From Hydrolagus colliei (lineage: Eukaryota), in the NCBI GenBank assembly GCA_035084275.1, contig CM068763.1:10912001-10976000 (forward strand): DNA of 64,000 nucleotides, written 5' to 3'. Position 1 is the stretch's first letter; each line of letters opens with the position of its first letter. The notes beneath the pieces were generated by a model. The model was not told the origin of the DNA and did not search any database. It saw only the letters and a list, made by a program, of their open reading frames with translations. Position numbers and translations under genes: made by a program. Shown here one piece after another: positions 1,422 through 51,934 of the stretch.

Positions 1422-3848
1422 ATGAGACAAAGTGGGATGAAAACTCTTCTGCCTGTTTTGGTGGCATTTGGCTTCAGATTAGTGGTTGGTAAGTATCTTT
1501 ATTTGGTAGTTTTTGTTCCCTTCCGACCTGTTTTACACGAGGAAGGTTTATTGTTTGAGGATTACAAGATGAGCTACGTTTAGTAATAGAAGGTGAGGAA
1601 GTGTGTACAGTAGCCACTGTTGTTAGAATGAATTTCTAGACACAAATGATCATGTTATAACAGGGTGGGCATCTAGTTACTGCAGTAAACTGATAACTGG
1701 ACCCCAGCTTAACTTGTCAATAACACTTAAGTCATCATGCTGTCAGTGGCAACAATTATTTTTGTATTTATACTTAACCCGTCACTCAGGAAACTCTTCA
1801 CTAAACCTTATCCTTGGAGCGCCACATAAGTGCAAGTCCTTACTGGACTAATTGGAAGCTCACCAGATAATAATAATAATCTTTGCATTTGATATAGTGC
1901 TTTTCACATCTTACCGATGTCTTATCGATGTCTCAAAGCGTTTCACAAATGTATTGTAAAGTGAATTGACTATACAGCATATATACATATACACACAGAC
2001 ACATATATGTGGGTGAAACACGGCAGCCAATTGCACACAGCAGTGCCCCTACAAACAGTCACAAGTACACAAAACATCAAGTCCAAACAGATCTCCCTCC
2101 CCGCACCCAACCATCCCATGTGTCTCTCAAGTTGTAATATCCATCAAAGGGACACATGTGCTTCACTGAATAATCTCATGTTCTGACCCAGCTCATCAAT
2201 ATAATGTGTCCACAGCTGGATTTGAAGTGCGCGTCTCAAGAGAACCAGTAATTGCTATCCATGGACACTATGCAATTCTGGGATGCAGTTTTACTCCCAG
2301 TGGAACGTCAACACAGGGCGTTGTGATCACCTGGCTGCGTGAAGACACTAAGGAGACAGTTTACAGTTATTACTACAGCAAACACCAGCACAGTGTACAC
2401 AGTCCTCGCTATGTAGCACGGACCAGTCTATTCCCGGAGGAGATTATAAAGGGAAATGCCTCATTGATACTCAAAGGAGTGCGACCAGAGGACAGCGGAG
2501 AATATGGGTGTTATGTCAGCACAAAAAGTGAAGATGCCAAAGGAACAATCTCTCTACAATTCGCAGGTACATGTTTATTCACTCCGAGACATTAAGTCTG
2601 GATGAACGACATTATACAAATAGAAGTTGTATTTGTGTCACTTTTCACGGAATATACCGTCAAGTGAATTGACTGTTTACTTTGCTGGTGAAATGCGGCA
2701 GCCAATTACTCACAGCAGCGTCCCCAAAAACAGTCGTGGACAGGGTCGTGTTGGTGGTTGGGGGGATAGCTAGGGGTGGGATTTGGAGTTCAGATTTATT
2801 TTATTTATGTAGCATTTTAGAGCGTCCAGAATTTAGACATTCAGAAATACATTCATTTCTATGATTGTTATTTATTCAAGAGTAAATTTAGATCGCGGTG
2901 GAATCTCTTCCCCTACAAAGCTTTAACAATGTAATATTAGTGAGGCTATAATACAATATAAGTATAACATTTGTCATTAAGACTTTTCCAAGTTCATTAT
3001 CACTGCTTGTACCTAAAGACTGTTGTTCTATTCCCCAGCATATTACAGGGAACCCATTTTATCGATCCAATTAGGAAAAAATGCAACACTTTTTCGATTT
3101 GAATCCCAAGGCTTCCCTCAAGCTGTTATTTCCTGGTTCGATGAACAACACAAGGATATTTCTTCGCAAACGGACACTTTTTTCCAACGGAATGCAGACG
3201 GCCTGTATTCAGTGAGTAGCACTCTGGAAATTGCTGACACGAGAGCAAACTCTTCGAAATACACATTTACAATAAGCAATGACGTCTTGGGACAATCACT
3301 TTCCAGGACATTTGTATTGACTTCAGGTGAGTTATTTTACCCGAACTCTGCAATCCGTGAATCTCTCCATTTCCCAATGCATGGCTGCACATTCTGTTCT
3401 CTTGCACTGTCACTTAAGTTCTGGGTACACATTTCGCCCACACAATGTACAATCAGTACACATTACAGTGTATTTTCCAGGAAGTCTTGACAACATTAGG
3501 TTCAAATTACTATATATATTTTAAAAATGATTGTGAGAAACTACTACAAAGCTCAGCACTGAAAGCACGGGTCATGGAATAAAATAGATTTATTTTGTGT
3601 GTTTTACAGAAATCCAAAAGGAAACAGAATCGCCTGCCATTAGAAATCGCTGGATACCGGCAGTCATTCTCATGTTTATTGAATTAATAGTCATTTTAAT
3701 TCTGGTGATGGTGCTGTTCATAAAGCATCGTAACTCAACAGAACATAAGAAATGCCATCAAAATGGACAATGGACGACACCACAAAACCGTCAACCACAT
3801 TGTACTAATTTGAACCCCAGCACTGTCTGGCCTCCAGATGTTCTGTAG
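1422..3848 (+). CDS. B7-family/butyrophilin-like type I membrane protein (signal peptide-IgV-IgC-TM-tail), CD276/VTCN1/HHLA2-like, ~314 aa
   Basis: Exons 1422-1488 (MRQSGMKTLLPVLVAFGFRLVV), 2216-2566 (IgV: ILGCSF..ITWLRE..RTSLFPEEIIKGNASLILKGVRPEDSGEYGCYV), 3039-3326 (IgC-like: YYREP..QGFPQAVISW..NADGLYSVSSTL) and 3610-3848 (TM WIPAVILMFIELIVILILVMVLFI plus tail). All introns are GT-AG and phase 1; the 945-nt join is open. A possible non-coding exon ends at 832 (GAG|GTGAGT). Exact orthologue not determinable here. Confidence 0.88.
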
Positions 3849-4098
3849 TTGTTTGGAAGGATTGGTTGCATGGACACAAAGTATGATTGAAACCAAGCAA
3901 TCTGATGGTCTATTTTATGAGTACTGATATAACTCATGCTTGTTGTTGTCATGTGACTCAATGGTTAAAGCACTCGCTTTACAAATGAGAGATCTGGGTT
4001 CAAATCCAGGCAGGTCAGGGCGAAAGTGCCAAAGAGAGAGAAAAACAGCAAAATAGCTTTAGTTGCCACCGTAAGGTTTCACTTTTACACTCACCTGA

Positions 4099-5021
4099 TG
4101 TTCTACGAATCCCGAGATTTAGAAACAAAGTAAAAAATAAATGGCGCGTGTTTCAGTCGTCAATGTACTGTTCCAACCACCATAGACTTGCCTTCGATTG
4201 ATGGGTGAGGTGAAGCCCAGAGGTGATCAAGGTCACAGGTATGGACAGGCTTTAAGTCTACTTCTGAACAACTGAGGAGATCACAGCCAAACACGAACTC
4301 ACAGCACCTGCAAATGATGAAATGGAGTGAGCAAAATCATCCATATATACAACTAATTGTATTGTCTCACAAAGATCAGTCAAACTAGCAACAACGATCG
4401 ATCCCACAGGGCTCCCATTACCCAAGGTTCAGATTCTTTCCTTTCACCACCACAGAGAAACACCATTGCACATGATTTACAGTCCATCCAAAGGACAATT
4501 GCAGACTTTCAACCTTCAGCTGACTTAACTACTCACTCAGAACCAACTCAGCCAAGTTAACAATTCAGCAAGTCAACAACCCCAACTGTGGTCCCAATTC
4601 CGCCTGACCCAAGGGAACTCCACTGAACTCCCATTAATATCATTAGACAAGACAAAGAAGATGTTATAATATCAGAGATGAGGGTTAGGTTTGGACTGGT
4701 CAAAGGTCAGGAGGATTTCTGGATATATTTGGGAGAGAAGTCCAAGAGTTAAGTTAGAACTGTTAGACCTGCAATATCAGTGAGACCTGTTAGACCTACA
4801 GGACAGTCCAGATAAGGTCAAGTATAGCAGCAGACAGACAGAACACCATCTTGAGATCAACCGACGTTCGATTCAGTTGAATCCTGTTTTAACCGGTAGT
4901 ATACCTCTGTATTTTAACCAGTCTGTATTTCACACTATATGAGATTATTTATTAAAAACCGTACCTTTCGTTGAGGATTGTTGGGTCATCGTTTGAACTC
5001 TCGGGATCGGAAATCCCAACA
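4099..5021 (+). mobile_element. Candidate solo LTR
   Basis: Begins TGTT..ATCCCGAGA and ends TCTCGGGAT..AACA (imperfect inverted termini). ATTAAA at 4951 is followed by a U5-like tail. It lies between a SINE head (3955-4025) and a SINE tail (5028-5097). No clean TSD; boundaries uncertain. Confidence 0.35.
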
Positions 5022-5207
5022 AGCGTGTACTGTGAAGCTCTTTGAGACGTCTCGAAGACGTCAAAAAGCGCTATATCAAATGCAAGGATTATTATAAATA
5101 TATCTGCGCGCACAGCACCCCCCTCTGTAGAGAAGCCACATTACAGTGTCCGACAGACATACAGCACACCCAGGAGGCATTGAGAAGACATTACAACAAA
5201 CGCAAGG

Positions 5208-5222
5208 TTTATTTTGTTTATT
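5208..5222 (-). terminator. Tandem AATAAA poly(A) signals, probable FUCA1 3' end
   Basis: TTTATT at 5208-5213 and 5217-5222 (AATAAA on minus), about 1 kb downstream of the FUCA1 stop. Confidence 0.4.
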
Positions 5223-5564
5223 GAAATGCACACAGTAAACCAGGCTGACAGACTCATAACACCAGCTAGCTATTTGGGTCTTAAAAGACTTCCATTGCCT
5301 TCCAAGTAACAATGAAGCACTTTATAATAAGAGTTCTACGAGATGAAAATTTGTTCTTTTAAACAATTATAAGAATTATCAGCAAACGACACACATGGTC
5401 AATTATTTTTTGTGAAAAAAAAGTATTATTTAAAGTATTCCTTTAAGTATTTTCCGTGAATAAACAATAAGATCTTCCCTTTATGTGGCGGCCATCACAC
5501 AAGACATTGCACAGCGGCCAAACGAGTGGGAGAGAGAGCAGCGATCGGCAGGGGGAGAGGCGTA

Positions 5565-5900
5565 GCTCCTGTAGCTCAGTGGTTAGAGCAGTTGCTTTAC
5601 AAGCCTTAGAATTTTCGAATCCAGGCAGATCAGGGCAGAACTTTGGGCAAGTTTCCTTTCTCCGCACGCCTAATAATAATCCCCCACCCACCTCAGCCAC
5701 CGAAAAACAAACAAACGCAATAATAAAATTGGTCATTTCAACCCACGGCTGTGGGGGACGCTGCTGTGCGCAATTGGCTGCCGCGTTTCGCCCGCAAATA
5801 TACAGTCAATTCACTTTACAGTCTATTCTGTGAAGCGCTTTGAGACGTCGATAAGATGTGAAAAAGCGCTCTATCAAATGCAAGGATTATTATTATTATT
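5565..5900 (+). mobile_element. tRNA-derived SINE (dominant family), near full length, antisense in the FUCA1 3' region
   Basis: A-box TAGCTCAGTGG, B-box-like TTCGAATCC, body CTTTGGGCAAGTTTCC..CAATTGGCTGCCGCGTTTCGCCC, tail AAGCGCTTTGAGACGTC..CAAATGCAAGGATTATTATT. Confidence 0.9.
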
Positions 5901-6197
5901 ATGTTGCTCATCATTAAATCATGCTTCAGTAAGCACTCGCAAATTTAGGAGGAAGAAAAAGTTAAAAGACGCAAGCCCGAAAATCTGTTTGCTGCCGTTA
6001 CTTGCTTCGATCCACGCAGTAACTTGCAATACAAATGTCATGGCAGTCCAACGCAGTGTTTCAGATTAAGTGAAAACCCGTAGAGTTCAGAACCCAGCAG
6101 CCACGATAGGAAATCTAGCAACGTATCCCATCATCGCAAAGCCCGAGGGATGATGGCCACCCAGTGTTTCCCCTCTGCAGAAAGCGCCTCCCATCGC

Positions 6198-7804
6198 TTA
6201 GGAAACGCCATCCAGCTTCACCGTCCAACCCAGCCGCGAGGGCAGCGTAGACCAGGGAACAGACGAGAGCAGGACGGAGATGCCCTTGGGTGAAGAACGA
6301 GTCCACTTCAGCGGTTGCGCGACTCCCAGCATCGTCACCTGGACAACACCGAACGGAAAGGGTTAACGGCTCATCGAGCCACTCAGACATAAAACCCACG
6401 CAATGTGTTTAGCTCTATATGTTTCTCACTGTTCAACCTTCTACCCTAATAACAAGACGAACTCGGGTTTGATTCCCAGGCGGGCGAAACCTTTTCCATG
6501 TTTCCTTACTCCACACATACGCCCAGCAGTGTTTACCTAGCAGCGAGCGGGAACCAGCTTGTTGGTCGATTGTCAGATTCCTGTAACGTTTCTGTGGGTA
6601 ATCTCGATCCCTTCAAAAATGTTTTTAAAATATCAATAATAATTTGGCCACTCAACCCGCGACTGTTTGTCGGACGCTTCCGTGCGCGGTCGGCGGCCGA
6701 GTTTCACCCCCGAAACAGCCAGCCAATTCCCCTCACACTATATTCTGTGAAGCACTTTGAGACGTCTCAATTATGTGCTGAGGTGCTATCTCAAATGCAA
6801 GTATTTTCACTCGGATTATTAACTTGTGTGGGAGGAGAGGGAGGGGGGGGGAAGTGGGGTGGGGGTGGGGGGGTGGTGGGTGTTGGGGGATTGGAAGAGA
6901 AAGCAGATAAAGAAAGTAAATAGAATCCACTTGCGTTGGTTGCTGATGTGACCTTTGGTGATTCCAGTGTTAGAGTATTTGACTCCGGCCAGGATAGAAA
7001 CGTGGCATAAACGGCTGACCCTTTCGAGGTGTACCTGGCAACAAAGAGAGAGACGCAAGCGTAGAAGTAGAGACCAACAGCAACAACAGCCACAAAAACA
7101 AAATGACACTTGTATAGCGCCTTTTAAGTTAGGAGGACGTCCCAAGGCGCTGGACAGTCACCGTGACAGACTCGAGCTGGGGACAGAGTAGGAGAGGGAA
7201 GGGTGGGGGGGGGCATTAGGAGTTGCCGATGGGACTATCGAAGAGGAGAAACTTGAATCGGGACTTGAAGGAGGCCGGTGGGGGGGGAGAACGAGGCGGA
7301 GGGACTGCGGGATGGACTTCGGGATATCGCACGCAAGGATCATTGCCATTATGATTATTATTTACCACACTGTGTCCGTAGAGTTCTCCTTCTGAACTCG
7401 CCAGGGCTTTGAGGAGTACACAGCTTCCCCGTTGACGCGCAGCCATTGCCCGAGGCCGCGCAGTCTTTCTTGGAAGACCGGAGCGATGGTACCCTCTTTG
7501 GTGGGACCAATGTTGAGCAGAAAATTCCCCCCGAAGCTGATGGTGTCCAGGAAGCTCTGCCAGACGATAAAACGTCGATCAAACCAAGAAGAGGAAGAGC
7601 AACGACAACGAACGGCAACAACAACTTGCATTCAAATAGCGCTTGACGGTGTCGGGAGTATTGGCTGCCGCGTTTCGCCCACCGATACACAGTCAATTCA
7701 CTTGGGAATCATTCCATGTAGCTCAGAGCGCTCGCCTTACAAGCGCGAGATCTGTGTTCGAATCCAGCCGTGCCAGGGCGAAACTTTGGGTAAGTTTCCT
7801 TACT

Positions 7805-7836
<32 letters not shown>

Positions 7837-10800
7837 CTAATAATAATCCTTCCAAAAAATACCACAATAATAAAATGGGTCATTTTCAATCCACAACTGT
7901 TTGTGGGGACGCTACTATGCGCAATTGACTGCCACCTTTCACCCACAAATACACAGTCAAACTCACTTTAAAGTACTGTATATACCGTGAAGCACTTCGG
8001 GACGTCTAGAAGACGTTAAAAAGCGCTCTATCAAACGCAAAGTTTACTATTAATATTTGCAAAAGCGCCTTGCAAGTCAGGAGGTCACAAACACACACAT
8101 ACATGGAGAATGGTAGGCAGGTCCATTAGATCGTTCAGCTTCATGTCTCTGCGATAGCCCCACGATCTCTTGTCGATCGAGGTGCACATTTCCCACTTGT
8201 GGTTCTGCAGCTTGGTTGGGCTGTACTTGTCGGCGCAGTTGAAGAATCCGCCATGTTTGCAGGGGCAGCCAATGCCCCAGCGATCATTAGTCACGACCGT
8301 ATCCTGGCCACAGAGAGAACGCAACATGGGAGACTTTTTTTTTCTACACACACACACACACAGACACACACACAAGCGAGGGAGAGAGCCAGGTTCAATT
8401 CCACGCAGGGCAAAACCTCGGACAAGTTTCCTTACTCCACACGCCTGATAACGAGCCCTCCCCCCCAAAAAAAAACAGTTTCATTTCGATCCACGGCTGT
8501 TTGTTGGGGGACATTCCGCGCGCAATTGGCTGCTGTGTTTCGCCCACATTTAAATACAGTCAATTCACTTGACAGTGTATTCTGTGAAACGCTTTGAGAC
8601 ACAGTCTAGAAGGCGTGGAAAGCGCTCTATCGAATGCAAGGATCATTATTATTATTATTATCACCCCCAGTCCAGGAACACAAACAGAGCTGAATACATC
8701 TCAACAACAACAACTCGCGGGCAAATCAAATCAGGCCTTGACCTAATTACCTTGACGGGGCTATCGTTGTAAAGCCAGGCCAGAAATTCAGTGGCGTTCC
8801 AATAGGAAGGTGGTGCCTCCCATGCTCCGTCTGACCAGATTACCTCTGGTTTGTACCTGGGGGAAACAAATACATTCCCTTACCTACTCGACTGAAACCA
8901 TATTGGGGGGAAAAAAAAATACACAGTCACCGCACTTTACAGCAGGTTCTGTGAAGCGCTTTGAGACGTCCTCCCGACATTAAAGGTTCTGGACCAAATG
9001 TGAGGATGAATTAATGACTGTTATTATTATTATCATCATCAGGAGTCTAGAAGTCCTGTAGCTCAGTGGTTAGAGCGCTCGCCTTACAAGCACGAGACCT
9101 GTGTTCGAATCCGGGAGGTCAGGGCCAAACCTTACTCCGCACACACACGCGCGCGCCTAATAATAATCCCTCAAAACAAATGGTCACTCGAATCCACGAC
9201 TGTTTGTGGGACACTGCTGCCGCGTTTGGCCCACAAGTGTACAGTCAATTCACTTTACAGTGTAATCCGTGAAGCGCTTTGAGACGCCTGGAAGACGTGA
9301 AAAGCGCTATATCAAAATGCAAGGATTCTTATTATTATGAACTTAATGAGTTTCGGCCGCGACGGTAATGAATTACCTCATGACCAATTCGTAGAGTTCC
9401 GGCAGGGTTTTCCTCTTGACAAACTCCTGAGTCCTGAAGCCATTCTTTTTGTCGTTCAAGTACATAGGGTTGAACCATTCCAGCATGGAATGGTACAATC
9501 CGTAATGGATGCTCCTGTCCATTCACAAAGGAGTACATTAAAACAAAATGGTTGATTGGTGTACCAAATTTGAGAACAGTGACCAAATATTGCCAACACC
9601 TCACCCACCACCATGTCAGTACAATATTACAGCGAATGCATTAGAATAACAGACATGAAAATGGAAGTACAGTAGTGAAAGACACGTGATCTGTTAGACC
9701 GCTCACTTCTCTTGCAAGGTTAGGTAACGCATCGCAAACACAGCAATTCCAAAGTTCAACAATAAACTTTCATGGGGGTGCAAGTCAGCAAATCATGAAT
9801 TGCCTCTGCTTTAGTCAACCGTTTAATTGTCCCAAAGGGTGCCAGTTTCTCGTGAGAATTTGACAACACTGCACTCAACTGTCGAGAACGTAAATGACAG
9901 TACGACAACAACAAAATTAACAAATTTTACGGAGCGCCTCGCACGCTGGGAGGACGTATCCCAAGGCGCAGTAACTGTGTTCAATTTCGCTGCCGCGCTT
10001 AGCCCACAAATGTACAGTCGGTTTTCCTTCCCCCTCCCCCCCCCCCCCCTTTCTCTGGTCCCTACCTTGGGACGTTGTTGTATTCTGTGAAGCGCTTTGA
10101 GACGTTGATAAGATGTGGAAAGCGCCATATAAATGTAAGGATTATTATTATATTGTATAACTGACGACAAGCAATGGGTCATACCAACCGTTTTCGTACT
10201 GCAGTTGCCAGATCTCCTACCAGGTCTCGATGGGGTCCTGTGTCAACTGAGTTCCAATTCCAGGACACAGGAGATGGCCAATTGGTGAATCCCTCATGGT
10301 GTTTGCTGGTCAGAACCACATACCTAGAGCATGGAATAGACAGGCGGTGATCGCGGAGTTAAAAAATCAGCAAAACATGATTAAGGAAATCCAAACTGTT
10401 CCAATACCAGTTTGACTGGAAACCTTCAACTTAATCCACAATCACATCATAATAAATCCTTACAATGTATTGGGCCGGAAGGCAGCCTCCTCGGGCCTGA
10501 CATCCTGTAAATACTGTATGATAATCATTGCGTTTGATATTTGTTATACGCCCAAAACAAAGGCAGAACAATTCACTTTCGCAGCATATTCCGTGAAGCG
10601 CTTTGAGACGTGAAAAGCGCTATACCAAACGCAAGGATTATTATCGTGGACTCCTGTAGCTCAGTGGTTAGAGCACTCGCTTCGCAAGCGAGAGGCCCGT
10701 GTTCGATTCCAGGTCAGGGCGGAACGTTGGGCAAGTTTCCTTACTCCACACGCTGAATAATATTCCCTCGAAAAAAACATAATAATTAATTGGTCATTCT

Positions 10801-11924
10801 CAATCCATGACTGCATTGCGCCAGTCATATAAAATGAAGGATTATTATTATTATTATTATAATCTTTATCATCATTATTATTCACATCTTCTAGACGTCT
10901 CAAAGTACTTCACAGAATATACTGTAAAGTGAATTGACTGTGTGTATATTTGTGGGCGAAACGCAGCAGCCAACTATGTACAGCAGCGTCCCACAAACAG
11001 TCGTTGTTTGAAAATGACCAAGTTATCATTGCTTTTTTTTGGAGGGATTATTATTTGGGGTGTGACGTAAGGAAACTTGCCCAGGGTTTCACAATGAAAT
11101 AACAATTATTATTATTATTATTATTATTGTTACAACAACTTGCATTTATATAGTGCCCTCACTCCACGCCGGACGGCGTCTCAGAGGGCTTCCCGATAAC
11201 AGATCCCGGGGCCGAGCCAGGGACGGAAGAGGGGAGAAGGTAACCGATAGCGCGGTCGAGAAGAACGGTCTTTAGCTGAGACCTGAAAGTAGGAAGAGAG
11301 GGGTGCGGGGGGGATGGAGTGGGGGGGGGGGGGAAGCGAAGGGAATGAGGAAGGGATTCCAGAGCCTCGGGGCGTAGTGGCTGAAGGCATTATTATTATC
11401 CTCATCCTTACCCTACCTGGCTGGTTGCCCCGTTTGCAATGGGGAAGTGGATATACATTTACAGCAACACACTAATTATATAACTTAAAACATTATACGG
11501 ATTTTCGGAAGGGAGGGAGGTAGACAGGGTAGATACAGACAGACAGATAATCAATCAGTCACCTGGCCCCTGATGCCTCGAACAATTCTGCCCACTGATC
11601 CGGATCGAAGAATTCGGCTGTGAATTGCGAGGCGAAGTCCGCGTACGTGAAGCCAGGCTTGTAGTTCTCCTTCATGAATGCCATGATGTCGGGTCTGTGA
11701 ACATCTTGCCAGTCCCACCAGAACCATTCGCTGACAAAGCTCGGCACGGAGAACACCCCCCAATGGATGAAGATGCCAAACTTGCCCTCATCGTACCACT
11801 GGGGCAAAGGTCTGGCATCCAGGCTGGCCCAGTCTGGTGTGTAACGAGGGGTGGCCTCAATCCCTAACCAGAGAGACAACCAAACACAACACCCACAGCT
11901 CACAAATCTCAGCATCTTTGTCAT
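6198..11924 (-). CDS. FUCA1: Lysosomal alpha-L-fucosidase (GH29), 8 coding exons, ~457 aa
   Basis: Exons (minus): 11924-11563, 10323-10189, 9514-9377, 8856-8751, 8303-8103, 7556-7366, 7034-6935, 6338-6198; the 1374-nt join is open. Peptides [42 protein letters not shown] (nucleophile Asp), [10 protein letters not shown] (acid/base Glu), [31 protein letters not shown]. Internal exon sizes 135/138/106/201/191/100 match recalled human FUCA1. FUCA1 rather than FUCA2 is supported by sequence and neighbours. Confidence 0.93.
7075..7330 (-). mobile_element. L2 LINE 3' fragment in FUCA1 intron 6
   Basis: Minus strand encodes [21 protein letters not shown] (L2 ORF2 C-terminus), then the tail GCGCCTTGGGACGTCCTCC..AAAAGGCGCT and a (TTG)n-like end. 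Confidence 0.75.
7713..8052 (+). mobile_element. tRNA-derived SINE with internal (CA)n expansion
   Basis: Same head, body and tail as the family consensus; (CA)n at 7805-7835. Confidence 0.85.
9053..9338 (+). mobile_element. tRNA-derived SINE
   Basis: GTCCTGTAGCTCAGTGGTTAGAGCGCTCGCCTTACAAG..GTTCGAATCC head and family tail. Confidence 0.85.
10570..11090. mobile_element. Cluster of SINE pieces in both orientations (FUCA1 intron 1)
   Basis: + tail 10570-10645, + head/body 10650-10830, - body/tail 10860-11090. Confidence 0.8.
11110..11390 (-). mobile_element. L2 3' fragment with the second tail type (ACGCC-GTCC-GGCGT stem-loop)
   Basis: Minus strand TTTCAGGTCTCAGCTAAAGACC (FRSQLKT) and tail CTCTGAGACGCCGTCCGGCGTGG..GCACTATATAAATGCAAGTTGTTGT. 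Confidence 0.7.
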
Positions 11925-14347
11925 CTCACACTCTTTATTTTCTTCTCTCTCACACACACACACAAAACACACACTTACTTCCTGAAACTGTAGCCAAAGA
12001 GGAAGTACTGTATTAACAATTCCCCTGAATTTCCTGCTAGTTTTTTCTTGTCTACCCCTTTCTCTCCTCTCCTCTCCTCCCCCCTGCACTGAGATCTATT
12101 GCATTACCATTTAAAAGCCTTGCCCACCTCCCCCTAATGTGTTGTCTTGTCAAAGGCAACTTCACTGCCCTACCCACCCCCCCCCCCCACTCTCACACTA
12201 TCCCTGCAGCTGTGACTGTATGGATCTCTCTTCACAACCAGGAAGTGCTTCGAACTTTGTTGTCAGAGCGAAAATATATAAACCCACTGATCTGTGGAAC
12301 GTGATTTGCAGACAGTCACAAGACAGGGAATGAGTTGCCTTTGAGAAGCCTCCCCCTCTGATGATAATTAACTCCTGACTTGCTTTGGAAACGCCTTTGC
12401 AGCACATTTTGTCCCCATTTTTTCTCAAATAAAAAGCATTCCTCTATAGTGTTGGAAGTGAAAATAATAATAATAATTAAAAAACAATTAAATAATAATA
12501 ATAATTAAATAACAACCCTGGCATTTGCATCAGCTCCTTCTGATAATCCTTGCAATAATAATAAATTGCAAGCGCTTTGAGACGTCGATAAAGTGTGGAA
12601 AGCGAGATATTAAATGTAAGGATTATTATTATTATTATAATCTGAGCATTTGATATAGCGCTTTTCACGTCTTCTAGTCTGTATAGTCTCAAATATACTG
12701 TAAAGGGAATTGACTGTATATTTTGTGTGCTGGGAGGTGGGGAGGGAATGTGGCAGCCAATTGCGCACAGCAGCGTCCCCACGATCGGTCGTGGATTGAA
12801 TTTATTATCCTTTTTGAGGGATTATTATCGGCCTTACCCAGGGTGTCGCCCTGCCTAGAATCGAACCCGGGTCTCTTGAGCTACCGGACTCCATCCAATG
12901 AAAATCTGTGTGTGTATCTTGGAGACGTTCTCAAAGCGCTTCAAGGAATACACCCTCAAGCTCTCCGGGCGTGAAGTGCACTATATAGAAGATGCAAGTT
13001 GTCGTCCGGGTGTAGTGACTGTGTATTTTGTGGGCGACACATGGCAGCCAGTTGCGCACAGCTGCGTTCCACAAACAAGTCGTGGATTTCAAAACAAGGA
13101 GACACGCACTTCCTTGTCGTGGTTTTCTTTCCCGATCAGCCGAATGTCTGCCATATGCAGAAACCCTTTCATTTAAAAAGAGTTCAAAGAGTCCGATTCC
13201 CCAGCCCCCGACTTGAAAGGCGCTCTCTATAAATATAATTTTATTGTTGGTGTGGCTGTTGCTTATTCCAAACACAACTGGGAGCTTACACCTCCGTGCA
13301 AACCAACCACCCAACCAACTAACCAACCCTGGGAAATAATCTATTCCTGGATCAGAAAATGTGACATTTTCTCCCTGCTCACCTAATCCTAGTGAGTATT
13401 AAAGAGTGCGAGATGACAAGAGTCAAGGCTTGGAGATGTAGAGCTCGTGAGGTTGGGGGGTGTAACTTGCTGCGATCGAACCAACTAAAATCACATAGTT
13501 TGCCATCGAAAACAAAGGCTGGCTGGCTTCCAGCAGCAAGTCTAATCAGAACTACCCCAACAGGTACGGAGTTGTTTACAAGGAAAACAGGACGTGTGGA
13601 CGAGATGAAATCACTGCTCCCATGATTAGTCTGCCCTCCCAGTCCTACCTGTCAGCTTTAGCTAACTTAATCGTCATAATAATAAGACTTCTTCTCTGTC
13701 ACTCTGGACCTACCTAGCTTAGAACCTGATAACCGATTTGTGTGGTGGGGGGAATTTCAGATTTCCAGCCATCTGCAATACTTTTGCCGTACTATTTTAA
13801 GGACTGTATTTTCAACTGAATGAGTCCCCCCCCACCCCCCAAAATCACCAAGCAACCTTTTTAATAATAATAATAATCCATGCATTTGATATAGCACTTT
13901 TCATGTCTTCTAGATGTCTCAAAGCGCTACACAGCATATACCGTTTTGAATGTATATATTTGTGGGCGAAGCTTGACAAACAATTGAGCACAGCGGCGTC
14001 CCCACAAACAGTCGTGGATTGAAATGTTACTGCCATGTTAACCGAGGAGATAAAGAGATGCACAGAACCAGGGAACATTTAGTCGTTTGCAATACCCTTG
14101 GATACCGCAAACCAGTGTTTTTGCTTTAATTAAAAAAAGAACGTTTTAAAAAACACACACACACACGCACACACACACGCACGCACACACGCGCACACAC
14201 ACGCACACACAAGAACAGTTTCCTCAATCTCGATGAACGCTCTTCATTTTATCATAAATCTGGTCTTTGTCATCCGCGTCGTCCAGAATTTCGTGGACCG
14301 CGTTGACCTCGTTGCGCCCGGATCCCTCTCCCCCCGAGCTCAGTATC

Positions 14348-16574
14348 TCAGTCTCCCTCGGGCTCGGCGGCGGAAAGCCACCCGGATTCTCTGTCGCTCT
14401 CGTGGAATTCCGCCTCGTGGTCAGGCCCGGGGTCCAAGTCGATGGGTCCGTTGTGGTGGACCGAGTTCATCAGGCTCACGCAATTGCTGCACAAACCGTA
14501 GCGCTTCCCGTGCTGCTGGATGATTTTAGCCGCCGCTCCGCCAAACGACTGCCTGCAGACTTTGCAGTTCAGCAGCTTCCCGGACTTGTGGATCTGGGAG
14601 TGTTGTGTTGGGAGGTGGGGGGAGGGTAGGGTGGTGGGAGTGGGGGACAAGACAAAAAATATGCACGGATGAGAGGTGGACATGAAAGCGCGGCTCTCGT
14701 AACCGCTCTGGGGAACGAAGGAAGGGTTTGGCGGGCAGGCGACCCGAGTGGGAACAAAGCCAACACAGGAGGAATCTGAAACAAAGACAAAAGTTGCTAA
14801 ATGGGGGGGGGGGGGGGGGGGGGGGGAACTCAGCAGGTCAGGCAGCATCCATGGAGAGAGGAAAAAGAGTCAACGTTTCGGGTCCACAACGAAGGGTTGA
14901 CTCCTTTTCCTCTCTCCATGGATGCTGCCTGACCTGCTGAAATCCCCCCCCCCCCCCCCCCCCCAGCAACTTTTGTCTTTGTTTCAGACTCCCAGCGTCT
15001 GCGGCGTTTTGCGCACAGGAGGAATCGAGCGGCGCTTACAGTGATGACGTGGCTGCGGAGATGCTCCAGTCGGGTGAACCTCTTTCCGCACGAGTCGCAG
15101 GGATAAGGCCTCTCTCCGGTGTGCGAGCGAAGGTGGCGTTTCAGGTCGGATTTGCGCTTCACCGTATGCGTGCAAAACAGGCATTTGAACCTGGTGTTCG
15201 GCAGCGTGCCGCACTCGCCTGCAACGAACCAACAAACGCTTTCACAATCGTTATAATCCGCAGCAAGCTTCACAGTTCACTTCACTTCTCACTGTAAAGT
15301 GAAAGCCCAAGGGCGAAACCTTGGGCAAGGTTCCTTACTTCACACGCACGCACACACACACACACACAATACACACATGTGCGCCTAATAATAATGCCTC
15401 CGAAAAAAATCACACGATGATAAAATTTGGTCATTTCAATCCACGACTGTTTGTGTGGGTGGGGGGGGACGCTGCTGTGCGCAATTGGCTGCCGCGTTTC
15501 GCCCACAAATATATACAGTCAATTCACTTTACGGTATATTCCGTGAAGCGCTTTAAAGCGCTGTATCCAATACAAGACTATTACTATTTAAGTTGAAAGT
15601 CGAACAATATTAAAAAAAATCCCAACAGCGCAATTTTAAGGCCGTGCCTCTGGATATCCACAAATCCGTCTCCCACTCTCACCCGAACTGTCCCCGCTCC
15701 AGTCGCCTACGACTTCCACAATCGTGGGCATGGGCGGGTACTGATCCTCGGCCTTCTGCCCTCGGCCGGGCTGGCGTACGGACTCCGGATCTTTCCTCAC
15801 CGGTGCCCAGATCAGCGGAGGCAGCAGCTCCTGCTGGTAGCCATGGGAGTGATTGGTTTGGCAATCCTCCTTTTTCTCCTCGGCCCGCGAGCCCAGGTCG
15901 GCTTGTTCGGACGCCCTGGGGGACGAGGCCAGGCCCACGGCCTGGAAGGCGGGCGTCTCGGAGGGGCCCTCCTCGTAAGTCCGACCCTCCGAGAAGGAGT
16001 TCCGAGGCTGGTCGGCCGCGAAGGAGAGCTGCGAGTCGGCGATCGGGTGCTGAGAGTCGAAGCGGCGCCAGGAATGTCCCAGGGCCCCGCCGGAGTCCGG
16101 AGGGGGCGGCTTCTGCGACTGAGCGGGACCGGGACCGTTGAACCCGGCCCCCCTCTTGTGGCCGGAGCGGCCGAAGTAGCGCTCCTCCTTCTCGCTGATG
16201 TCCAGCGAGGATTTGATGAAGCCTTTGCAGGCGCCGATCACGTCGGTCATCTGCAGGTAGCTGGCGGCCGACATCACCTCGATCACGTTCTGGCCGCTGA
16301 GCGACAGCCGGCCCGAGTACACGAAGTCCAGGATGGTCAGGAAAGCCTCGGCCGAGAACACGTCGAAGGTGGCCACGGCCGCCTGCCCTCCCTCCTGGGC
16401 TCCGTGCAGCAGCAACATCCGGAAGTAGCCGCTGCTGGCGAACAGGACGTTGCGATGGGCCTTGAAGACCCTCCCCTCCACCACGATCCGACAGTCGCAG
16501 AATATCTCCTGCCTCCGCTGTTTGTTGAGGTGCTCGAGCAAGCGGGTTTGGTGGGACAAAATCTCCATTTCCAT
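14348..16574 (-). CDS. ZBTB8A: BTB/POZ and C2H2 zinc-finger protein ZBTB8A (~438 aa as read; C-terminus possibly frameshifted)
   Basis: Exons (minus): 16574-15683 ([54 protein letters not shown]), 15218-15040 (two C2H2 fingers, HTGERPYPC linker), 14593-14348 ([21 protein letters not shown]). All introns GT-AG and in frame. Confidence 0.88.
14777..15013. mobile_element. Palindromic non-autonomous element (Penelope-like by inference) with 13-bp TSD in the last ZBTB8A intron
   Basis: Inverted arms 14775-14874 and 14896-14988. Flanking direct repeat CACAGGAGGAATC at 14764-14776 and 15014-15026. Confidence 0.75.
15300..15590 (+). mobile_element. 5'-truncated SINE in a ZBTB8A intron
   Basis: AGGGCGAAACCTTGGGCAAGG..family body and tail. 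Confidence 0.85.
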
Positions 16575-16664
16575 AGAGGAACCTCCTCTCACCCCACCGC
16601 CCACCGCCCACCGCCCCCTCCACCACCTTTTTTTTTTTTCGCAGCCGACCCTGTCAGCAACCAC

Positions 16665-17085
16665 AACAAGAACATAAGAATTAGGAGCAGGATTAGGCCA
16701 TTCAGCCCCTCGAGCCCGTTTCCCCCCCCCCCTCCCCCCCCCTTCATTCAATAAGAACACGGCTGATCTTCTAATCTAACTCCACCTGCCTCCCCACCCC
16801 CCCACCTCCCCACCCCACCCCCACCCCGCCTTATCCCCATATCTTTTAATCCCTTAATCCACAAGAAATCTGTCAATCTCCGTCCGGAATATGTTCAAGG
16901 ACTGACCGAGCAGCTACAGGCCTTTGGGGTTAGAGAATTGCATCCATTCACTACCCTCTTGAGTGAAGAAGTTTTTCCTCAACTCAGTGTGAAACGGCTG
17001 GCCCCTAATTTTAAGACTGTGACCCCCCCCCCCCCCCCCGCCCGACCAGGGGAAACAGTCCCACTGTCTACTCTGTCGTACCCCT
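16665..17085 (-). mobile_element. CR1-type LINE 3' fragment
   Basis: Reverse complement of the CR1 ORF2 end and 3' UTR (AACTTCTTCACTCAAGAGGGT..ATCAGCCGTG..GGCTCGAGGGGCTGAATGGCCTAATCCTGCTCCTAATTCTTATGT). Confidence 0.75.
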
Positions 17086-17339
17086 TAAGAACAAAGACAA
17101 CTTGGATTTACAGAGTGCCCTCCGCTCCGCGCCAGACAGCGTCTCAGAGCGCTTTACAATAACAGATTCCCCCCGAATGTGACCGACAGTTAAAATGACC
17201 AATTTTATTATTGTGGGTTTATTTTGTGTGTCCCTATATTTCGCCCCCGCAGTGTCACCCCGTAATGTTGGGCTGTATTTTGGGGGGATAATGAGGATCT
17301 GGTGGGAGTTTTTGAGCTACAAATATATTTTAATTTCTC

Positions 17340-17815
17340 AACCCTCAGCCCTCCCCGCAACACATACACACACATCCCCCACAAACACACACCCCACCCA
17401 CATGCACACACATCCCCCACAAACACACACCCCACCCACATGCACACACATCCCCCACAAACACACACCCCACACACATCCCCCACTCACATACATACAC
17501 ATGCCCCCCACACACACATACACACACATCCCCCCCTCCCACACACATACCCCACAGACACATCCCCCACATACACACAACCCCCCACAAACACACACAT
17601 ACACACAACCTCCACACTCCTACATACACACAACCCCCCCCATCACCCCCCCACCCCACATACAAACCCACAAACCCCCACCAACACACATAATACACAC
17701 ACACACCGCAAACACATACATCCTCCACCCATACACACACACCATCCAATACACACACACACTCCCCCCCTCCACCCACACCCGGATCTGTCTGTCTCCT
17801 ACACAAACACACAGA
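17340..17815. repeat. (CA/CCCA)-rich low-complexity tract
   Basis: Degenerate tandem ACAC/CCCCAC units. Confidence 0.9.
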
Positions 17816-17914
17816 CAACACTGAACCCAGATTGTCTGATGCCCCCCTAGGTGAGGGAGGGGGGGGGGGGGGGGGGGGGGGAGAAGCTGTAGGTTTAGGT
17901 TAAATAATGATCAG

Positions 17915-18400
17915 GTTTACCCCCCCACCCATCCACCCTCCTCTACTCTCCCCCTTTCTTCCTCTCCACTCCCCCACCCCCTCCTCTTCACTCCCCCACC
18001 CCCTCCTCTCCCCACCCTCCTCTCCCCCACCCCCTCCTCTCCCCTCCCCACCACCCCTCCCCATCTCCTCACCCTCCTCTCCCCACCTCACCCCCACCTC
18101 CCCTCCCCATCTCTCTTCTCACCCCCTCCTCTCCCCCCCCCCTCCCCCAACCCTCTCCCTCACCCCCCCCCACCTCCCCTCCCCATCTCTCTTCTCACCC
18201 CCTCCTCTCCCCCCCCCTCCCCCAACCCTCTCCCTCATCCCCCTTCCCCCCCCCACCTCCCCTCCCCATCTCTCTTCTCACCCTCTCCCCACCTTCCTCT
18301 GCTCTCCCTCCCTCCATCCATCACCCCCCCCCCCCCCCCCCTCCCCTCCCCTACTCACTCTCCCCTCTCTCCCCCTCACTCACCACCCTCTCTGTTCTCT
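17915..18400. repeat. Polypyrimidine (C/T) tract with a ~70-bp unit repeated about three times
   Basis: CCCCCACCTCCCCTCCCCATCTCTCTTCTCACCC recurs three times. Confidence 0.85.
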
Positions 18401-18649
18401 GTGTCCTTCTCCAGCTCAGATTTACTCCGCGATCCCACCAGGGTCTGATTTCCGACCCGGACGTGCTTGTAAATATATATATATATATCTCTCTCTCTAG
18501 TGAATGTGTGTGTGTGTGTGTGTTAGAGTTAAACCCCCGGAAGGGACTTCAATGTGAAACCCAACACCAGGTCCAGATCACTTCTCCCCCAGTTAACTCA
18601 CTCTCTGCCACCAATACAATTCAATACAGTTCACAGCTCCTTGTTAAAG

Positions 18650-19125
18650 CATTGTGTGTGTACTGTATACATGTGTGTGTATACTGTATATATGCGTGTG
18701 TATATTACTGTATATATGTGTGTATATTACTGTATATATGTGTATATTACTGTATATATGTGTGTATTACTGTATATATATGTGTATATACTGTACATGT
18801 GTATATACTGTATATACGCATGTGTAAATTACTATTTGTGTGTATATACTGTATATAGGTGTGTGTATACTGTATATAGGTGTGTATTACTGTATATATG
18901 TGTGTGTATTACTGTATAGATGTGTGTATATACATATGTGTGTGTATATACTGTATATATGCATATGTATATTACTGTATTTATGTGTGTATATGTGTGT
19001 GTATACTGTATATATGCATGTGTATATTACTGTATATATATGTGTATATACTGTATATATGTGTGTATATTACTGTATATATGTATGTGTGTATACTGTA
19101 TATGTATATATGTGTGTATGTGTGC
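18650..19125. repeat. AT-rich minisatellite (TATTACTGTATATATGTGTG-like)
   Basis: About 20 degenerate ~20-bp units. Confidence 0.9.
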
Positions 19126-19139
19126 AGGTTGCTCTATAA

Positions 19140-19400
19140 CTCCCTTCCTCATTCCCTTCCTCACTCCCTTTGCTTCACCTCTTCCTAGTTTCAGGTCTCG
19201 GCTAAAGACCTCTCTGTCCGACCGCGCCTTCAGACACCTTTCTCCCCCCCTCCCCCCCCCCCCCTCCCCTCCTCTCCCCCCCCACCCGCCCCACTCCGGC
19301 TCGGACCCCAGGAATTCCGCCATTGTGAAGCGCTCTGAAACCGTCCGGCTTGGAGCGCGCTATATATAAAAATCAAAGTTGTTGTTGTTGTTGTTGTATG
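19140..19400 (+). mobile_element. L2 3' fragment (second tail type)
   Basis: TTTCAGGTCTCGGCTAAAGACCTCTCTGTCCGACCGCGCCTTC (FRSRLKTSLSDRAF), then GAAGCGCTCTGAAACCGTCCGGCTTGG..(TTG)n. Confidence 0.7.
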
Positions 19401-42062: not shown

Positions 42063-44140
42063 CTCTGTTTACCTAGTACTGTAGCAAGTTAGTCTTTTGG
42101 CAGATCTGTCTATATACAGAGGCAATAAACTCTTTACAAAAAATTGCTGTACTATAAATTGGTGGGATGCTTCAAAATCGGCTGCCGCGTCTCACCCACA
42201 AAATGTACTCAAGACGGTTTGTAATCTGTGAAGGCCTTTGAGACATCTTGAGGACACGATGGGGTGGCTGGCTGTATCAAAATGCAAGGGATCGTCTTAT
42301 TATTATTATTCTCGTCATCTATTTAAAATATAACGAAATACGTTTCCTTGTAGATTATAGAAAAGAGGCGGCGGGATAGAATTAACAACAGCTTGTCTGA
42401 ACTCCGGCGTTTGGTCCCGACAGCCTTTGAAAAACAGGTAATTTCACCTCAGATGAGTGTGATTTTCAGCGTTCAGCAGACGTACCAACAGTTTATCCTC
42501 GAACAGGCAGCGTTCGGAATATCCTGGTACATTACACAGCTCTGTGGGACACCGCTGTGCGATTGTCTGCTGTGTTTCACCCACACAATCCGCAGCCAAT
42601 TCACTTTCACGGTGTATCCTGTGAAGCGCTTCGAGACGTCTCAACAAGGTGATAAGGGGCTTCTTATCGGGAGTGGTTAGAGCGCTCGCTCTACAAGCGT
42701 GAGACCTGTGTTCGAATCCAGGCAGGTCAGGGCGAAACTTTGGGCAAGTTTCCTAACTCCAGATAATAATCCGTCCAAAAAAACAACAACACAATAATAA
42801 AAATTGGTCATTTCAATCCACGGCTGTTTGTGGGGGACGCCGCTGTGCTCAATTGGCTGCCGCGTTTCGCCCACAAACATACAGTCAATTCACTTTACAG
42901 TATATTATGGGAAGCGCTTTGAGACGTCGACAAGATGCGAAAAATGCTGTATCAAAATGCAAGGTTGATTATATTATTATTATTATTTGTTTCCTTATTC
43001 TGTCGCACAGGGAACTTCGAAGCCGGAAAAAGCAGAGATCCTACAGATGACGGTTGAGCATCTGAAACTACTCCACGCAACAGGAGGGAAAGGTAACACA
43101 GGAAAATGCAACACACACACACACACACACCGCAGTGTCCAACTTCAGCCAGTCTCATGAGTCCCTTAAAAATATAAAGCAACGTCATATTAAATAGCTC
43201 GAGCACAAACAGCCCTAATGGTGTTGAGGAATTCTCTACCCCCCCAAAAGGCTGTAGATGCTCAGTCAGTCCTTGAACATATTCAAGACTGAGATTGATA
43301 GATTTCTTATGGATAACGGGATTCAGGGATGTGAGGATAAGGCGGGACAGGTGGAGTTAGATTAGAAGATCAGCCGTGATCTTATTGAATGGCGGGGGGG
43401 GGGGGCAGGCTCGAGGGGTCGAATGCCGCACGATATACTGTAAAGTGTAAAGTGTAGTGACTGTGTATTTTTAGAAAAGTCCGCCCCTTATGATTTGCGT
43501 TAACCCTGACACTCTGCTGTTCTCTCTCCGGACAGGTTACCCCGAGCCCGGTTTGCTGGCTGTGGATTACCGGAGCGTGGGCTTCAGGGAATGCCTGGCC
43601 GAAGTCATGACCTACCTGGGCTCGCTTGACCAAGGCGAGGGTAGTCACGGTTCCAATCCGCTGAAGGACAGGCTCGTGTCTCACCTCGCCAACTGCGCGT
43701 CCGACACCGAACCCACCCCAGCTCCAGACCGGGCCTGGGCCTGGGCTTGGCCTTGGCCCTGCCGCCCTCTGACGGCTTTACTGCCGCGCGCCTGGGAGGC
43801 GGCTCGACCGCCGAGGGGAGAACTCGCCCACCGCGACCGTCTCCCCGCCGAGTTGTCGCGGCGCGGGGCGTGGCCCGGCCTCACCTCCGCCTTCCCCAGC
43901 GTCCGGTCAAACGCGGCGTCGTTACCCGGCCTCACCGCATGCCTGGGGATGAACTCGCCCTCGCCGTGTCCCCCCTCCCGTCTCCACGCCGTGCGTACGG
44001 CCGACCCGGCCGGCCCTCTGTCCCTCGGGCCCTTCCAGCCCGCGTCGCCCTTCAGGCTCCGCGCGTTTGAGCAGACGAGGAGGAGCCCGGGCGCTCGCAA
44101 AACCAACAGATCGTGGACAACCGAGATCGGAGCTTTCTGA
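40517..44140 (+). CDS. HEYL: Hairy/enhancer-of-split related with YRPW motif-like bHLH-Orange repressor (~305 aa)
   Basis: Exons 40517-40596 ([26 protein letters not shown]), 41820-41886 (..ARKRRRG), 42354-42437 ([28 protein letters not shown]), 43011-43092 ([27 protein letters not shown]), 43536-44140 (Orange [20 protein letters not shown]; ends SWTTEIGAF*). The 918-nt join is open. HATGG, AWPW and a degenerate YxxW favour HEYL over HEY1/HEY2. Confidence 0.9.
42671..42987 (+). mobile_element. tRNA-derived SINE in HEYL intron 3
   Basis: Near-consensus copy; the tail ends ~25 bp before the exon 4 acceptor. Confidence 0.88.
43215..43425 (+). mobile_element. CR1-type 3' fragment in HEYL intron 4
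   Basis: CAAAAGGCTGTAGATGCTCAGTC..TTCAAGACTGAGATTGATAGATTT..AGAAGATCAGCCGTGATCTTATTGAATGGCGG. Confidence 0.7.
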
Positions 44141-45787: not shown

Positions 45788-46200
45788 NNNNNNNNNNNNN
45801 NNNNNNNNNNNNNNNNNNNNNNNNNNNNNNNNNNNNNNNNNNNNNNNNNNNNNNNNNNNNNNNNNNNNNNNNNNNNNNNNNNNNNNNNNNNNNNNNNNNN
45901 NNNNNNNNNNNNNNNNNNNNNNNNNNNNNNNNNNNNNNNNNNNNNNNNNNNNNNNNNNNNNNNNNNNNNNNNNNNNNNNNNNNNNNNNNNNNNNNNNNNA
46001 NNNNNNNNNNNNNNNNNNNNNNNNNNNNNNNNNNNNNNNNNNNNNNNNNNNNNNNNNNNNNNNNNNNNNNNNNNNNNNNNNNNNNNNNNNNNNNNNNNNN
46101 NNNNNNNNNNNNNNNNNNNNNNNNNNNNNNNNNNNNNNNNNNNNNNNNNNNNNNNNNNNNNNNNNNNNNNNNNNNNNNNNNNNNNNNNNNNNNNNNNNNN
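45788..46200. other. Assembly gap (413 positions, N except a lone A at 46000) just upstream of the MACF1 ATG
   Basis: Seen directly in the sequence. Confidence 0.99.
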
Positions 46201-51911: not shown

Positions 51912-51934
51912 GTAATGTATATTGACTGTAATCA

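Follow-up and report, generated by a model that had tools for sequence, protein, structure and literature searches.

The stretch of DNA analyzed here (the window) comprises 64,000 nucleotides from Hydrolagus colliei and carries a compact B7-like gene of four exons, all with AG/GT borders. The joined ORF is 945 bases in length and codes for a protein of 314 amino acids, which itself has no exact record in the databases searched. Genes for a fucosidase, a BTB-zinc-finger protein, and a HEY-like bHLH protein are its neighbors, and a tblastn search of the window revealed no further B7-like copy. The features of the gene are as follows.

1422-1488, + strand: exon 1, start and signal peptide (MRQSGMKTLLPVLVAFGFRLVV); ATG at 1422, GT donor at 1489-1490, ends in phase 1.
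2216-2566, + strand: exon 2, IgV domain; AG/GT flanks, Pfam V-set match, and alignment to the CD276 IgV domain.
3039-3326, + strand: exon 3, IgC (C2-type) domain without Cys; AG/GT borders, reading frame, pLDDT, and dN/dS.
3092-3094, + strand: F158 (TTT), hydrophobic site two residues before the Cys site; from column composition.
3095-3097, + strand: R159 (CGA), the residue under the CD276 B-strand Cys in the pairwise alignment; from phmmer.
3098-3100, + strand: F160 (TTT; exon residue F20), best assignment of the B-strand Cys position; from the profile alignment and sturgeon relatives.
3134-3136, + strand: W172 (TGG), invariant C-strand Trp of the Ig core; from column counts and the predicted strand.
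3266-3268, + strand: F216 (TTT; exon residue F76), F-strand Cys position; YTF aligned over YSC.
3610-3848, + strand: exon 4, stalk, transmembrane helix, and short cytoplasmic tail; AG acceptor, ORF to the stop codon TAG at 3846-3848.
3681-3683, + strand: E260 (GAA), glutamate within the transmembrane helix; from motif conservation.

The encoded protein has the characteristics of the B7/butyrophilin superfamily, including a V-set domain, a C-type Ig domain, and one transmembrane helix, with each Ig domain residing on its own phase-1 exon. The IgV domain matches the Pfam V-set model (E 1.2e-13) and keeps both canonical cysteines (C46 and C121), and its exon of 351 bases has the same length in Callorhinchus milii. 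AlphaFold predicts a helix at residues 250-286, which are encoded by exon 4. The transmembrane glutamate is part of the motif RN[RKQ]W-x8-[IT]E[FL], which is present in seven of the eight chondrichthyan members of the orthologue group. The four-exon layout, including the first and terminal exons, is common to C. milii, Chiloscyllium, and Hypanus. For sawshark P0010, isoforms lacking the IgC exon are predicted, and so transcripts may not always include the IgC domain.

Exon 3 is flanked by AG (3037-3038) and GT (3327-3328) and is in phase 1. When read from position 3041, it yields 95 codons, YYREPILSIQLGKNATLFRFESQGFPQAVISWFDEQHKDISSQTDTFFQRNADGLYSVSSTLEIADTRANSSKYTFTISNDVLGQSLSRTFVLTS, with no stop and no Cys codon, and each of the two alternative frames contains four stops. 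This in-frame translation bears out the statement of the first-pass annotation that the exon lacks Cys, and the open frame with its canonical borders agrees with its description of the frame as intact. The exon alone scores 26.2 bits (E 8e-6) against C2-set_3 (PF22705, butyrophilin-type Ig-C), which is the best-scoring Pfam model for the IgC domain, and the whole protein scores 23.3 bits. The exon does not reach the curated cut-off of 27 bits, a narrow miss that is expected because both Cys match states are lost, and the fold-level evidence is nonetheless positive.

The F-strand Cys position is unambiguous, since YTF matches YSC at TTT 3266-3268, exactly where it had first been annotated. This column holds F in 51, L in two, and V in one of the Cys-less domains examined, and C in all 19 Cys-bearing domains. 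The C-strand Trp column is W in 54/54 and 19/19 domains of the two groups, respectively. The B-strand Cys position was likewise annotated as TTT, at 3098-3100, but the ungapped strings given in its support (TITCSSYQGYPEA and TLFRFESQGFPQA) set the Cys over Arg rather than Phe, and the phmmer pairwise alignment to CD276 also places it over R159. Taken at face value, these alignments describe a Cys-to-Arg change on strand B and a Cys-to-Phe change on strand F, with the flanking Phe residues as bystanders and no hydrophobic pair. The resemblance of the A-T-L-x-R motif to the common V-T-L-x-C pattern fits this reading, as does the Cys-to-Trp spacing of 13 residues in human CD276. However, the R159 column varies and is largely polar (L15, Q10, R9, T6, S4), and this side chain probably faces solvent, whereas the F160 column of the 54 Cys-less domains is hydrophobic (F19, Y15, L12, V5, M2, S1). 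In the family profile alignment, the cysteines of all 19 Cys-bearing relatives fall on the F160 column and are followed by a one-residue insertion. Moreover, sturgeon relatives with the identical short turn (P0360-P0363) carry Cys exactly at the F160 and F216 columns.

The pattern of residues along strand B is informative as well. Exon residues F18 and F20 are hydrophobic and R19 and E21 are variable and polar, and the F158 column is composed of L26, F18, and V8 in Cys-less domains and of L16, I2, and V1 in Cys-bearing domains. We take PD-L1 and PD-L2 to have the same shorter Cys-to-Trp spacing as the window IgC domain, which also counts against an Arg replacement. Because the profile column, the sturgeon cysteines, and the residue pattern agree, F160 is the better B-strand assignment despite the pairwise alignment. 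The original placement is thereby supported, and we consider the exchange of Cys for Arg unlikely.

The nearest relative of the window protein is C. milii P0001, annotated as 'CD276 antigen', with 65% identity. Gene order and strands at the C. milii locus match those of the window, with the B7-like gene (+) accompanied by genes for alpha-L-fucosidase (-) and a BTB-zinc-finger protein (-). Judged by this arrangement and by the protein match, the window gene is the syntenic orthologue of the C. milii gene. At the Megalops locus, no informative neighbor gene was found within 10 kb.

In a phylogeny computed with the two trait (Cys) columns removed, the window and C. milii proteins group together (100/100), and a 43-row Cys-less clade (99/99) is sister to a 17-row clade of true CD276 proteins (100/100), with the joint clade supported at 97/84. 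The node uniting all Cys-less lineages has support of only 94/69. The window protein falls outside the CD276 orthologue clade and in the separate sister clade, and the catshark has its own true CD276 with both IgC cysteines kept. As placed by this tree, the window gene belongs to a sister family of CD276 and is not CD276 itself. The protein also carries the marks of this family, which are F160, F216, and W172, together with a B-C turn that lacks one residue relative to CD276.

Some teleost members (P0337, P0341, and P0359) are named 'V-set domain-containing T-cell activation inhibitor 1' by NCBI, and the gene could accordingly be viewed as the fish counterpart of B7-H4 (VTCN1) rather than as a relative of CD276. 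The fucosidase, BTB-zinc-finger, and HEY-like bHLH neighbors lend some weight to this view, as their human counterparts FUCA1, ZBTB8, and HEYL are presumably located on 1p together with VTCN1. We take human CD276 to lie at 15q24 beside NPTN and not beside a fucosidase gene. However, CD276 gives much stronger sequence matches than VTCN1 does, and human VTCN1 lies outside the clade that unites CD276 with the Cys-less proteins (97/84), as a long branch whose sequence was confirmed against 4gos only in its IgV part. Identity with VTCN1 is thus quite improbable, and we continue to assign the gene to the sister family of CD276.

An initial alignment of the window protein and its relatives had both cysteines missing in 10/10 sequences. 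With wider sampling, at least 54 IgC domains lack both cysteines, compared with 19 that bear them. The Cys-less domains come from sharks, rays, chimaeras, lungfish, coelacanth, bichir, sturgeon, bowfin, teleosts, and one turtle, the last being the single sampled match in amniotes. The change is not a notable event of this genome, as it is common to orthologues and paralogues across cartilaginous and ray-finned fishes, lungfish, coelacanth, and turtle. This spread implies that the family dates to early jawed vertebrates. An alignment of chondrichthyan orthologues has Phe at both sites in C. milii, Chiloscyllium, and Hypanus. A swap of 'Phe plus Phe' does not hold as a rule, however, since at the B site the family has any of several large hydrophobic residues, and at the F site a near-invariant Phe (51/54). 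The disulfide-free IgC domain is an ancient, conserved, and selected trait of this CD276-like family and is not specific to one genome.

The number of changes behind this distribution depends on the tree. A quick tree gave one disulfide change, and careful trees with more taxa and the trait columns removed gave two to three, so we make no claim that the disulfide was lost only once. In the tree, the sturgeon genes that carry the Cys pair lie nested among genes that lack it, and the pair may be evolutionarily switchable.

Could the loss of both cysteines be the first sign of relaxed constraint in a decaying gene? The moderate dN/dS of the IgC exon relative to C. milii (0.43) and the upper bootstrap bound leave some room for this reading (range 0.24-0.91, with values of at least 1 in 1.6% of resamples; the bootstrap covers two well-behaved pairs only, and dS reaches saturation in some of the comparisons between chimaera and shark). 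However, the corresponding value between shark and ray is approximately 0.19, and constraint on the IgC exon is no weaker than that on the IgV exon, for which the values are 0.40 and 0.17. The dN/dS comparison proposed at the outset thus indicates purifying selection on the IgC exon. Each of the four exons has an open frame and canonical splice sites, and the Cys-less state has been kept in dozens of species separated by hundreds of millions of years.

The predicted fold also argues against decay. AlphaFold assigns pLDDT values of 90-95 to IgC residues 141-236 and places F160 in strand B (155-165), W172 in strand C (169-173), and F216 in strand F (211-220). The best Foldseek fold matches of the model are the ectodomains of BTN3A1, BTN2A1, PD-L1, and B7-H6. 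In addition, a 925-nt Logan contig from skate encodes a complete 291-aa member of the family and is colinear with the protein, and it therefore represents a spliced transcript, so at least this relative is transcribed and spliced. Because dN/dS is below 1, conservation is family-wide, and the predicted fold is confident, the exon is not a decaying one. A pseudogene is largely refuted, given that stops, frameshifts, broken splice sites, and a dN/dS near 1 are all absent, and we judge it very improbable. The proposal that the domain had undergone a coordinated change to an aromatic core rather than decay therefore stands insofar as the domain is intact, under selection, and hydrophobic at the disulfide sites, but it does not describe an event of this genome.

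Sequencing or assembly error in place of true TGT codons is scarcely credible. Both TTT codons are indeed a single base from TGT, but Phe is encoded at each site (by TTC or TTT) in the separately assembled genomes of C. milii, Chiloscyllium, and Hypanus, and it also occupies both sites in approximately 50 further proteins. The proximity of each codon to TGT had been pointed out in the first-pass annotation, and although true, it applies to any Phe codon. Both TTT and TTC occur among the orthologues at the F160 and F216 sites, reflecting synonymous differences between species, and nearness to TGT is therefore uninformative about how recently the change occurred.

Among solved structures, the best matches by sequence are to CD276 (E 1e-54 and 1e-27). 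CD276/B7-H3 (4i0k, 9lme, 9ly6) shares with the window gene the order of signal, IgV, IgC, and transmembrane segments, with a separate exon for each Ig domain. The two proteins also have motifs in common, including LFP..GNASL in IgV and both AA-YY/YS-KP and QG(Y/F)P...W in IgC. However, true CD276 retains both IgC cysteines in every sampled lineage (catshark, coelacanth, lungfish, sturgeon, and teleosts), whereas the window gene has neither, and the B-C turn of true CD276 has one residue more. True CD276 is also far more conserved, with the catshark protein 59% identical to that of human, whereas the window protein differs far more from human CD276. Furthermore, true CD276 has an acidic cytoplasmic tail and a transmembrane segment that is free of charged residues, unlike the Glu-bearing helix of the window protein.

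The proteins annotated as 'CD276 antigen-like' are located in the same clade as the window gene. They include C. milii P0001, Heptranchias P0002, Chiloscyllium P0005, and Hypanus P0006, with further members in Amia (P0008), Acipenser (P0067), and Protopterus (P0070). Their IgC domains are Cys-less like that of the window protein and share its xFxF/YES-QG(Y/F)P and YTF motifs, although the cytoplasmic tail of the window protein is longer than in the shark members. Among close relatives sampled outside the Cys-less family, the IgC disulfide cysteines are kept in 19/19. The ectodomains of butyrophilins, PD-L1, and B7-H6 match the window model with target-normalized TM-scores of approximately 0.7-0.8 at only about 20-24% identity, but their IgC domains contain the disulfide. 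Butyrophilins also carry a B30.2 domain, which the window protein lacks.

Some Ig domains are naturally devoid of the B-F disulfide, among them domain 1 of CD2, domain 1 of CD58, and the I-set domains of titin and telokin. These domains form a stable beta-sandwich with hydrophobic residues at the disulfide site and a retained core Trp, as in the window IgC domain. The Cys-less reading of the exon is correct, but it is no new kind of biology. What differs is the setting, as CD2 and CD58 are V-set adhesion proteins and titin and telokin carry intracellular I-set domains, whereas the window domain is C2-type and extracellular and belongs to a B7-family ligand.

Our preferred interpretation, to which we assign a probability of roughly 0.88, is that the gene codes for a functional B7-family type I membrane protein from an ancient Cys-less sister family of CD276, in which a hydrophobic pair replaces the IgC disulfide. 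Exon 3 would form the membrane-proximal domain of the 314-aa protein, which is predicted to comprise a signal peptide, the IgV and IgC domains, a transmembrane helix, and a short tail. In place of the B-F disulfide, strand B would contribute a large hydrophobic residue (F160) and strand F the near-invariant Phe (F216), both of which probably pack with the retained W172 inside the beta-sandwich core. The domain is expected to fold in this disulfide-free form and is maintained by purifying selection. Presumably it serves as a spacer that keeps the ligand-binding IgV domain off the membrane, as is usual for B7 IgC domains, and the gene is likely to be expressed in H. colliei.

The family as such may be undescribed. 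A full-text literature search recovered no paper on Cys-less IgC domains in fish CD276-like genes. The conserved intramembrane Glu hints that the protein may pair with another chain whose membrane helix contains a basic residue. We offer as a tentative idea, and one with somewhat less than even odds, that an undescribed family with a switchable Cys pair and an intramembrane Glu constitutes a distinct lineage of fish immune-regulatory ligands with its own structural rule.

Annotation pipelines label members of this family as 'CD276 antigen', 'CD276-like', 'VTCN1', or 'butyrophilin-like 8', whereas the data show them to form a single coherent sister family of true CD276. The Cys-less IgC domain and the short B-C turn serve as its recognition marks, and delimiting the family in this way is relevant to inferring the immune checkpoint repertoires of sharks and fishes. 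The family also provides a natural series in which an extracellular C2-type Ig domain has functioned disulfide-free over hundreds of millions of years, with Cys-pair relatives available for comparison.

The B7-like gene consists of four exons whose splice sites are all canonical, and these join to form a 945-base ORF coding for 314 amino acids. A search of the whole window found no second B7-like gene. The exons are as follows.

1422-1488, forward strand: signal peptide exon
2216-2566, forward strand: IgV exon, with both canonical Cys present
3039-3326, forward strand: IgC exon, flanked by AG (3037-3038) and GT (3327-3328)
3610-3848, forward strand: exon for the stalk, transmembrane (TM) helix and tail

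In the frame that begins at 3041, the IgC exon has 95 codons with no stops and no Cys, and each of the two remaining frames carries four stops. TTT codons are present at 3098-3100 (exon residue 20, F160 of the protein) and 3266-3268 (exon residue 76, F216), and TGG for the core Trp (W172) is located at 3134-3136. The exon boundaries and codons reported in the first-pass annotation are therefore correct.

The protein matches the Pfam V-set domain (E 1.2e-13), and its IgC exon matches the butyrophilin-type C2-set_3 domain with 26.2 bits, slightly below the cut-off of 27. The closest solved structures by sequence are those of CD276/B7-H3 (E 1e-54 for the 4Ig form and 1e-27 for the 2Ig form), followed by butyrophilins and PD-L1. 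An AlphaFold model, made with an input alignment of 10 sequences, has pLDDT values of 90-95 across most of the IgC domain and assigns F160 to strand B (155-165), W172 to strand C (169-173) and F216 to strand F (211-220). When used as a Foldseek query, this predicted fold matches the ectodomains of BTN3A1, BTN2A1, PD-L1 and B7-H6.

The nearest protein to the gene product is the Callorhinchus milii 'CD276 antigen' (P0001; 65% identity). In C. milii, as in the window, the B7-like gene is followed by an alpha-L-fucosidase gene on the opposite strand and then by a BTB-zinc-finger gene, with order and orientations matching, and thus the two B7-like genes are orthologues. The remaining features of the window are listed below.

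About 5000-12100, reverse strand: alpha-L-fucosidase gene, first coding exon in ORF 11562-12095; position and strand as in C. milii
14833-16775, reverse strand: BTB/POZ-zinc-finger gene, presumably ZBTB8-like, with a BTB exon and a C2H2 finger exon (14833-15276); likewise next in order in C. milii
42354-42440, forward strand: HEY-type bHLH exon, with a probable downstream coding exon at about 43475-44140
2644-2738 (intron 2 of the B7-like gene), 5718-5902, 42672-42985, 57630-57841 and 62819-63090: example sites of a SINE-like repeat
1-400, 17200-19400 and 50500-52450: long purine/pyrimidine-rich low-complexity tracts and CA/TG microsatellites
45788-45999 (212 bases) and 46001-46200 (200 bases): runs of N separated by one base

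We take the fucosidase, ZBTB and HEY-type genes to be reminiscent of human chromosome 1p (FUCA1, ZBTB8, HEYL). The SINE-like repeat is interspersed in about 40 copies of roughly 100-330 bases over the 64 kb, and a tRNA-like stretch (about 3930-4030) lies directly downstream of the B7-like gene. The low-complexity tracts and microsatellites yield long spurious ORFs in several frames.

The lack of IgC Cys residues is not peculiar to this gene, contrary to what the first-pass annotation had implied. Both are missing in every sequence of a first alignment that sampled the elephant shark, five sharks and rays, a second sawshark paralogue, bowfin and a characiform. From a full HMMER search against 1.84 billion representatives, with the hits then aligned by domain, we obtained 54 Cys-less IgC domains. 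Members identified by name come from sharks, rays, skates and a second C. milii paralogue, from lungfish (several genes) and coelacanth, and from bichir, reedfish, sturgeons and bowfin, as well as from tarpon, eel, bonefish, arapaima, herring, characins, catfish, salmonids, carp and one turtle. Automatic names vary within one clade, including CD276, CD276-like, VTCN1, butyrophilin-like 8 and CD86-like (P0121/P0326, P0337, P0341, P0351, P0359).

At the F-strand site, the alignment assigns the Cys position unambiguously to F216, as had been proposed, with Phe in 51 of 54 Cys-less domains and Cys in 19 of 19 Cys-bearing domains. The B-strand site is less straightforward. The ungapped alignment in the first-pass annotation, like a phmmer alignment to CD276, sets the Cys over Arg159 (CGA, 3095-3097) rather than a Phe. 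However, three results favour F160, the codon originally named. When 19 Cys-bearing relatives were aligned onto a profile made from the family IgC domains, all 19 had Cys in the F160 column and a one-residue insertion right after it (CSS-y-RGYP or EG-w-FP versus FES-QGFP). Column composition also alternates as expected of a beta-strand: exon column 18 (L26/F18/V8) matches the L two residues ahead of Cys in the relatives, column 19 is variable and often polar, column 20 (F160) is F19/Y15/L12/V5/M2/S1 and column 21 is mostly E/T/S. Finally, the sturgeon proteins P0360-P0363 have the short turn of the family and carry Cys exactly in the F160 and F216 columns (ALLSCIS-TGYP ... YTCVL). That each TTT is one base from TGT, also pointed out initially, is uninformative on timing because a single base change turns any Phe codon into a Cys codon.

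With the human CD276 ectodomain as query, its sequence coming from the solved-structure alignment, we recovered true CD276 orthologues (58-62% identity) in sturgeon, paddlefish, teleosts, coelacanth, lungfish and a catshark. All have both IgC Cys, whereas the window's gene has neither. A 2026 survey independently reports CD276 from all gnathostomes and remarks on its unusual degree of conservation (PMC13262535). We built maximum-likelihood trees from V-C units after taking out the two trait columns. In them, the window's gene groups with C. milii (100/100) inside a 43-row Cys-less clade (99/99), which together with a smaller 'c' group forms the sister lineage of the CD276 clade (100/100). Support for the joint clade is 97/84, and it excludes human VTCN1, whose sequence was confirmed only for its IgV part (identical to 4gos). 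These trees place the gene in a sister family of CD276. We therefore reject its identification as CD276 proper, given its separate clade and the catshark's own CD276 with both Cys.

The node joining all Cys-less lineages is weaker (94/69), and the trees require two to three changes of Cys state because the Cys-bearing sturgeon genes (Acipenser 'CD276 antigen-like', P0360-P0363) are nested beside the Cys-less P0141 at 100/92. Either these sturgeon genes kept the Cys pair while other lineages lost it repeatedly, or they gained it back.

For the IgC domain, dN/dS between the window and C. milii is 0.43 (dN 0.151, dS 0.352; bootstrap 0.24-0.91, with 1.6% of resamples at or above 1), and between Chiloscyllium and Hypanus it is 0.19 (bootstrap 0.07-0.36). 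These values are close to those for IgV (0.40 and 0.17, respectively). The dS for window versus C. milii is 0.35-0.49, which makes a second chimaera the probable source of the window. The Phe codons differ synonymously (TTT in the window, TTC in C. milii, mixed in shark and ray). One public sequencing run yielded a 925-nt contig in which a complete 291-aa skate member can be read colinearly, and which thus represents a spliced transcript with the Cys-less IgC domain included. No transcript evidence for the window's own gene was found in the public sequence records searched. Inclusion of the Cys-less domain may not be obligatory in every transcript. In P0010 (Pristiophorus isoform X2), IgV is joined straight to the TM exon and the IgC exon is skipped, and shorter predicted isoforms are listed for Pristis (X3/X4) and Acipenser (X2).

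The TM helix (about 3651-3720) contains a glutamate, E260 (3681-3683). The surrounding motif, RN[RKQ]W-x8-[IT]E[FL], is kept in seven of eight chondrichthyan members of the orthologue group and is missing in the 'b' paralogues and true CD276 members compared. A buried acidic TM residue is often a sign of pairing with a partner chain.

The IgC domain is an intact, conserved and selected C2-type Ig domain, in agreement with the original view that it is not decaying. Both of its disulfide columns are occupied by hydrophobic residues, W172 of the core is retained and the B-C turn is one residue shorter than in CD276. The two disulfide columns of an Ig fold lie opposite each other across the sandwich. 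F160 and F216 probably pack against W172 in place of the cystine, which would allow the domain to fold without oxidative cross-linking and presumably serve as the membrane-proximal spacer for the IgV domain.

Ig domains that likewise lack the B-F disulfide have long been known, including domain 1 of CD2 and of CD58 and the I-set domains of titin and telokin, and the window's gene adds a new orthologue to a set of proteins that public databases already contain. Our search of the full-text literature, whose coverage did not extend to the main 2009 fish B7 review, found no description of such a family. What is possibly new is a rule at the family level, wherein a sister family of CD276 across jawed vertebrates has a disulfide-free IgC domain.
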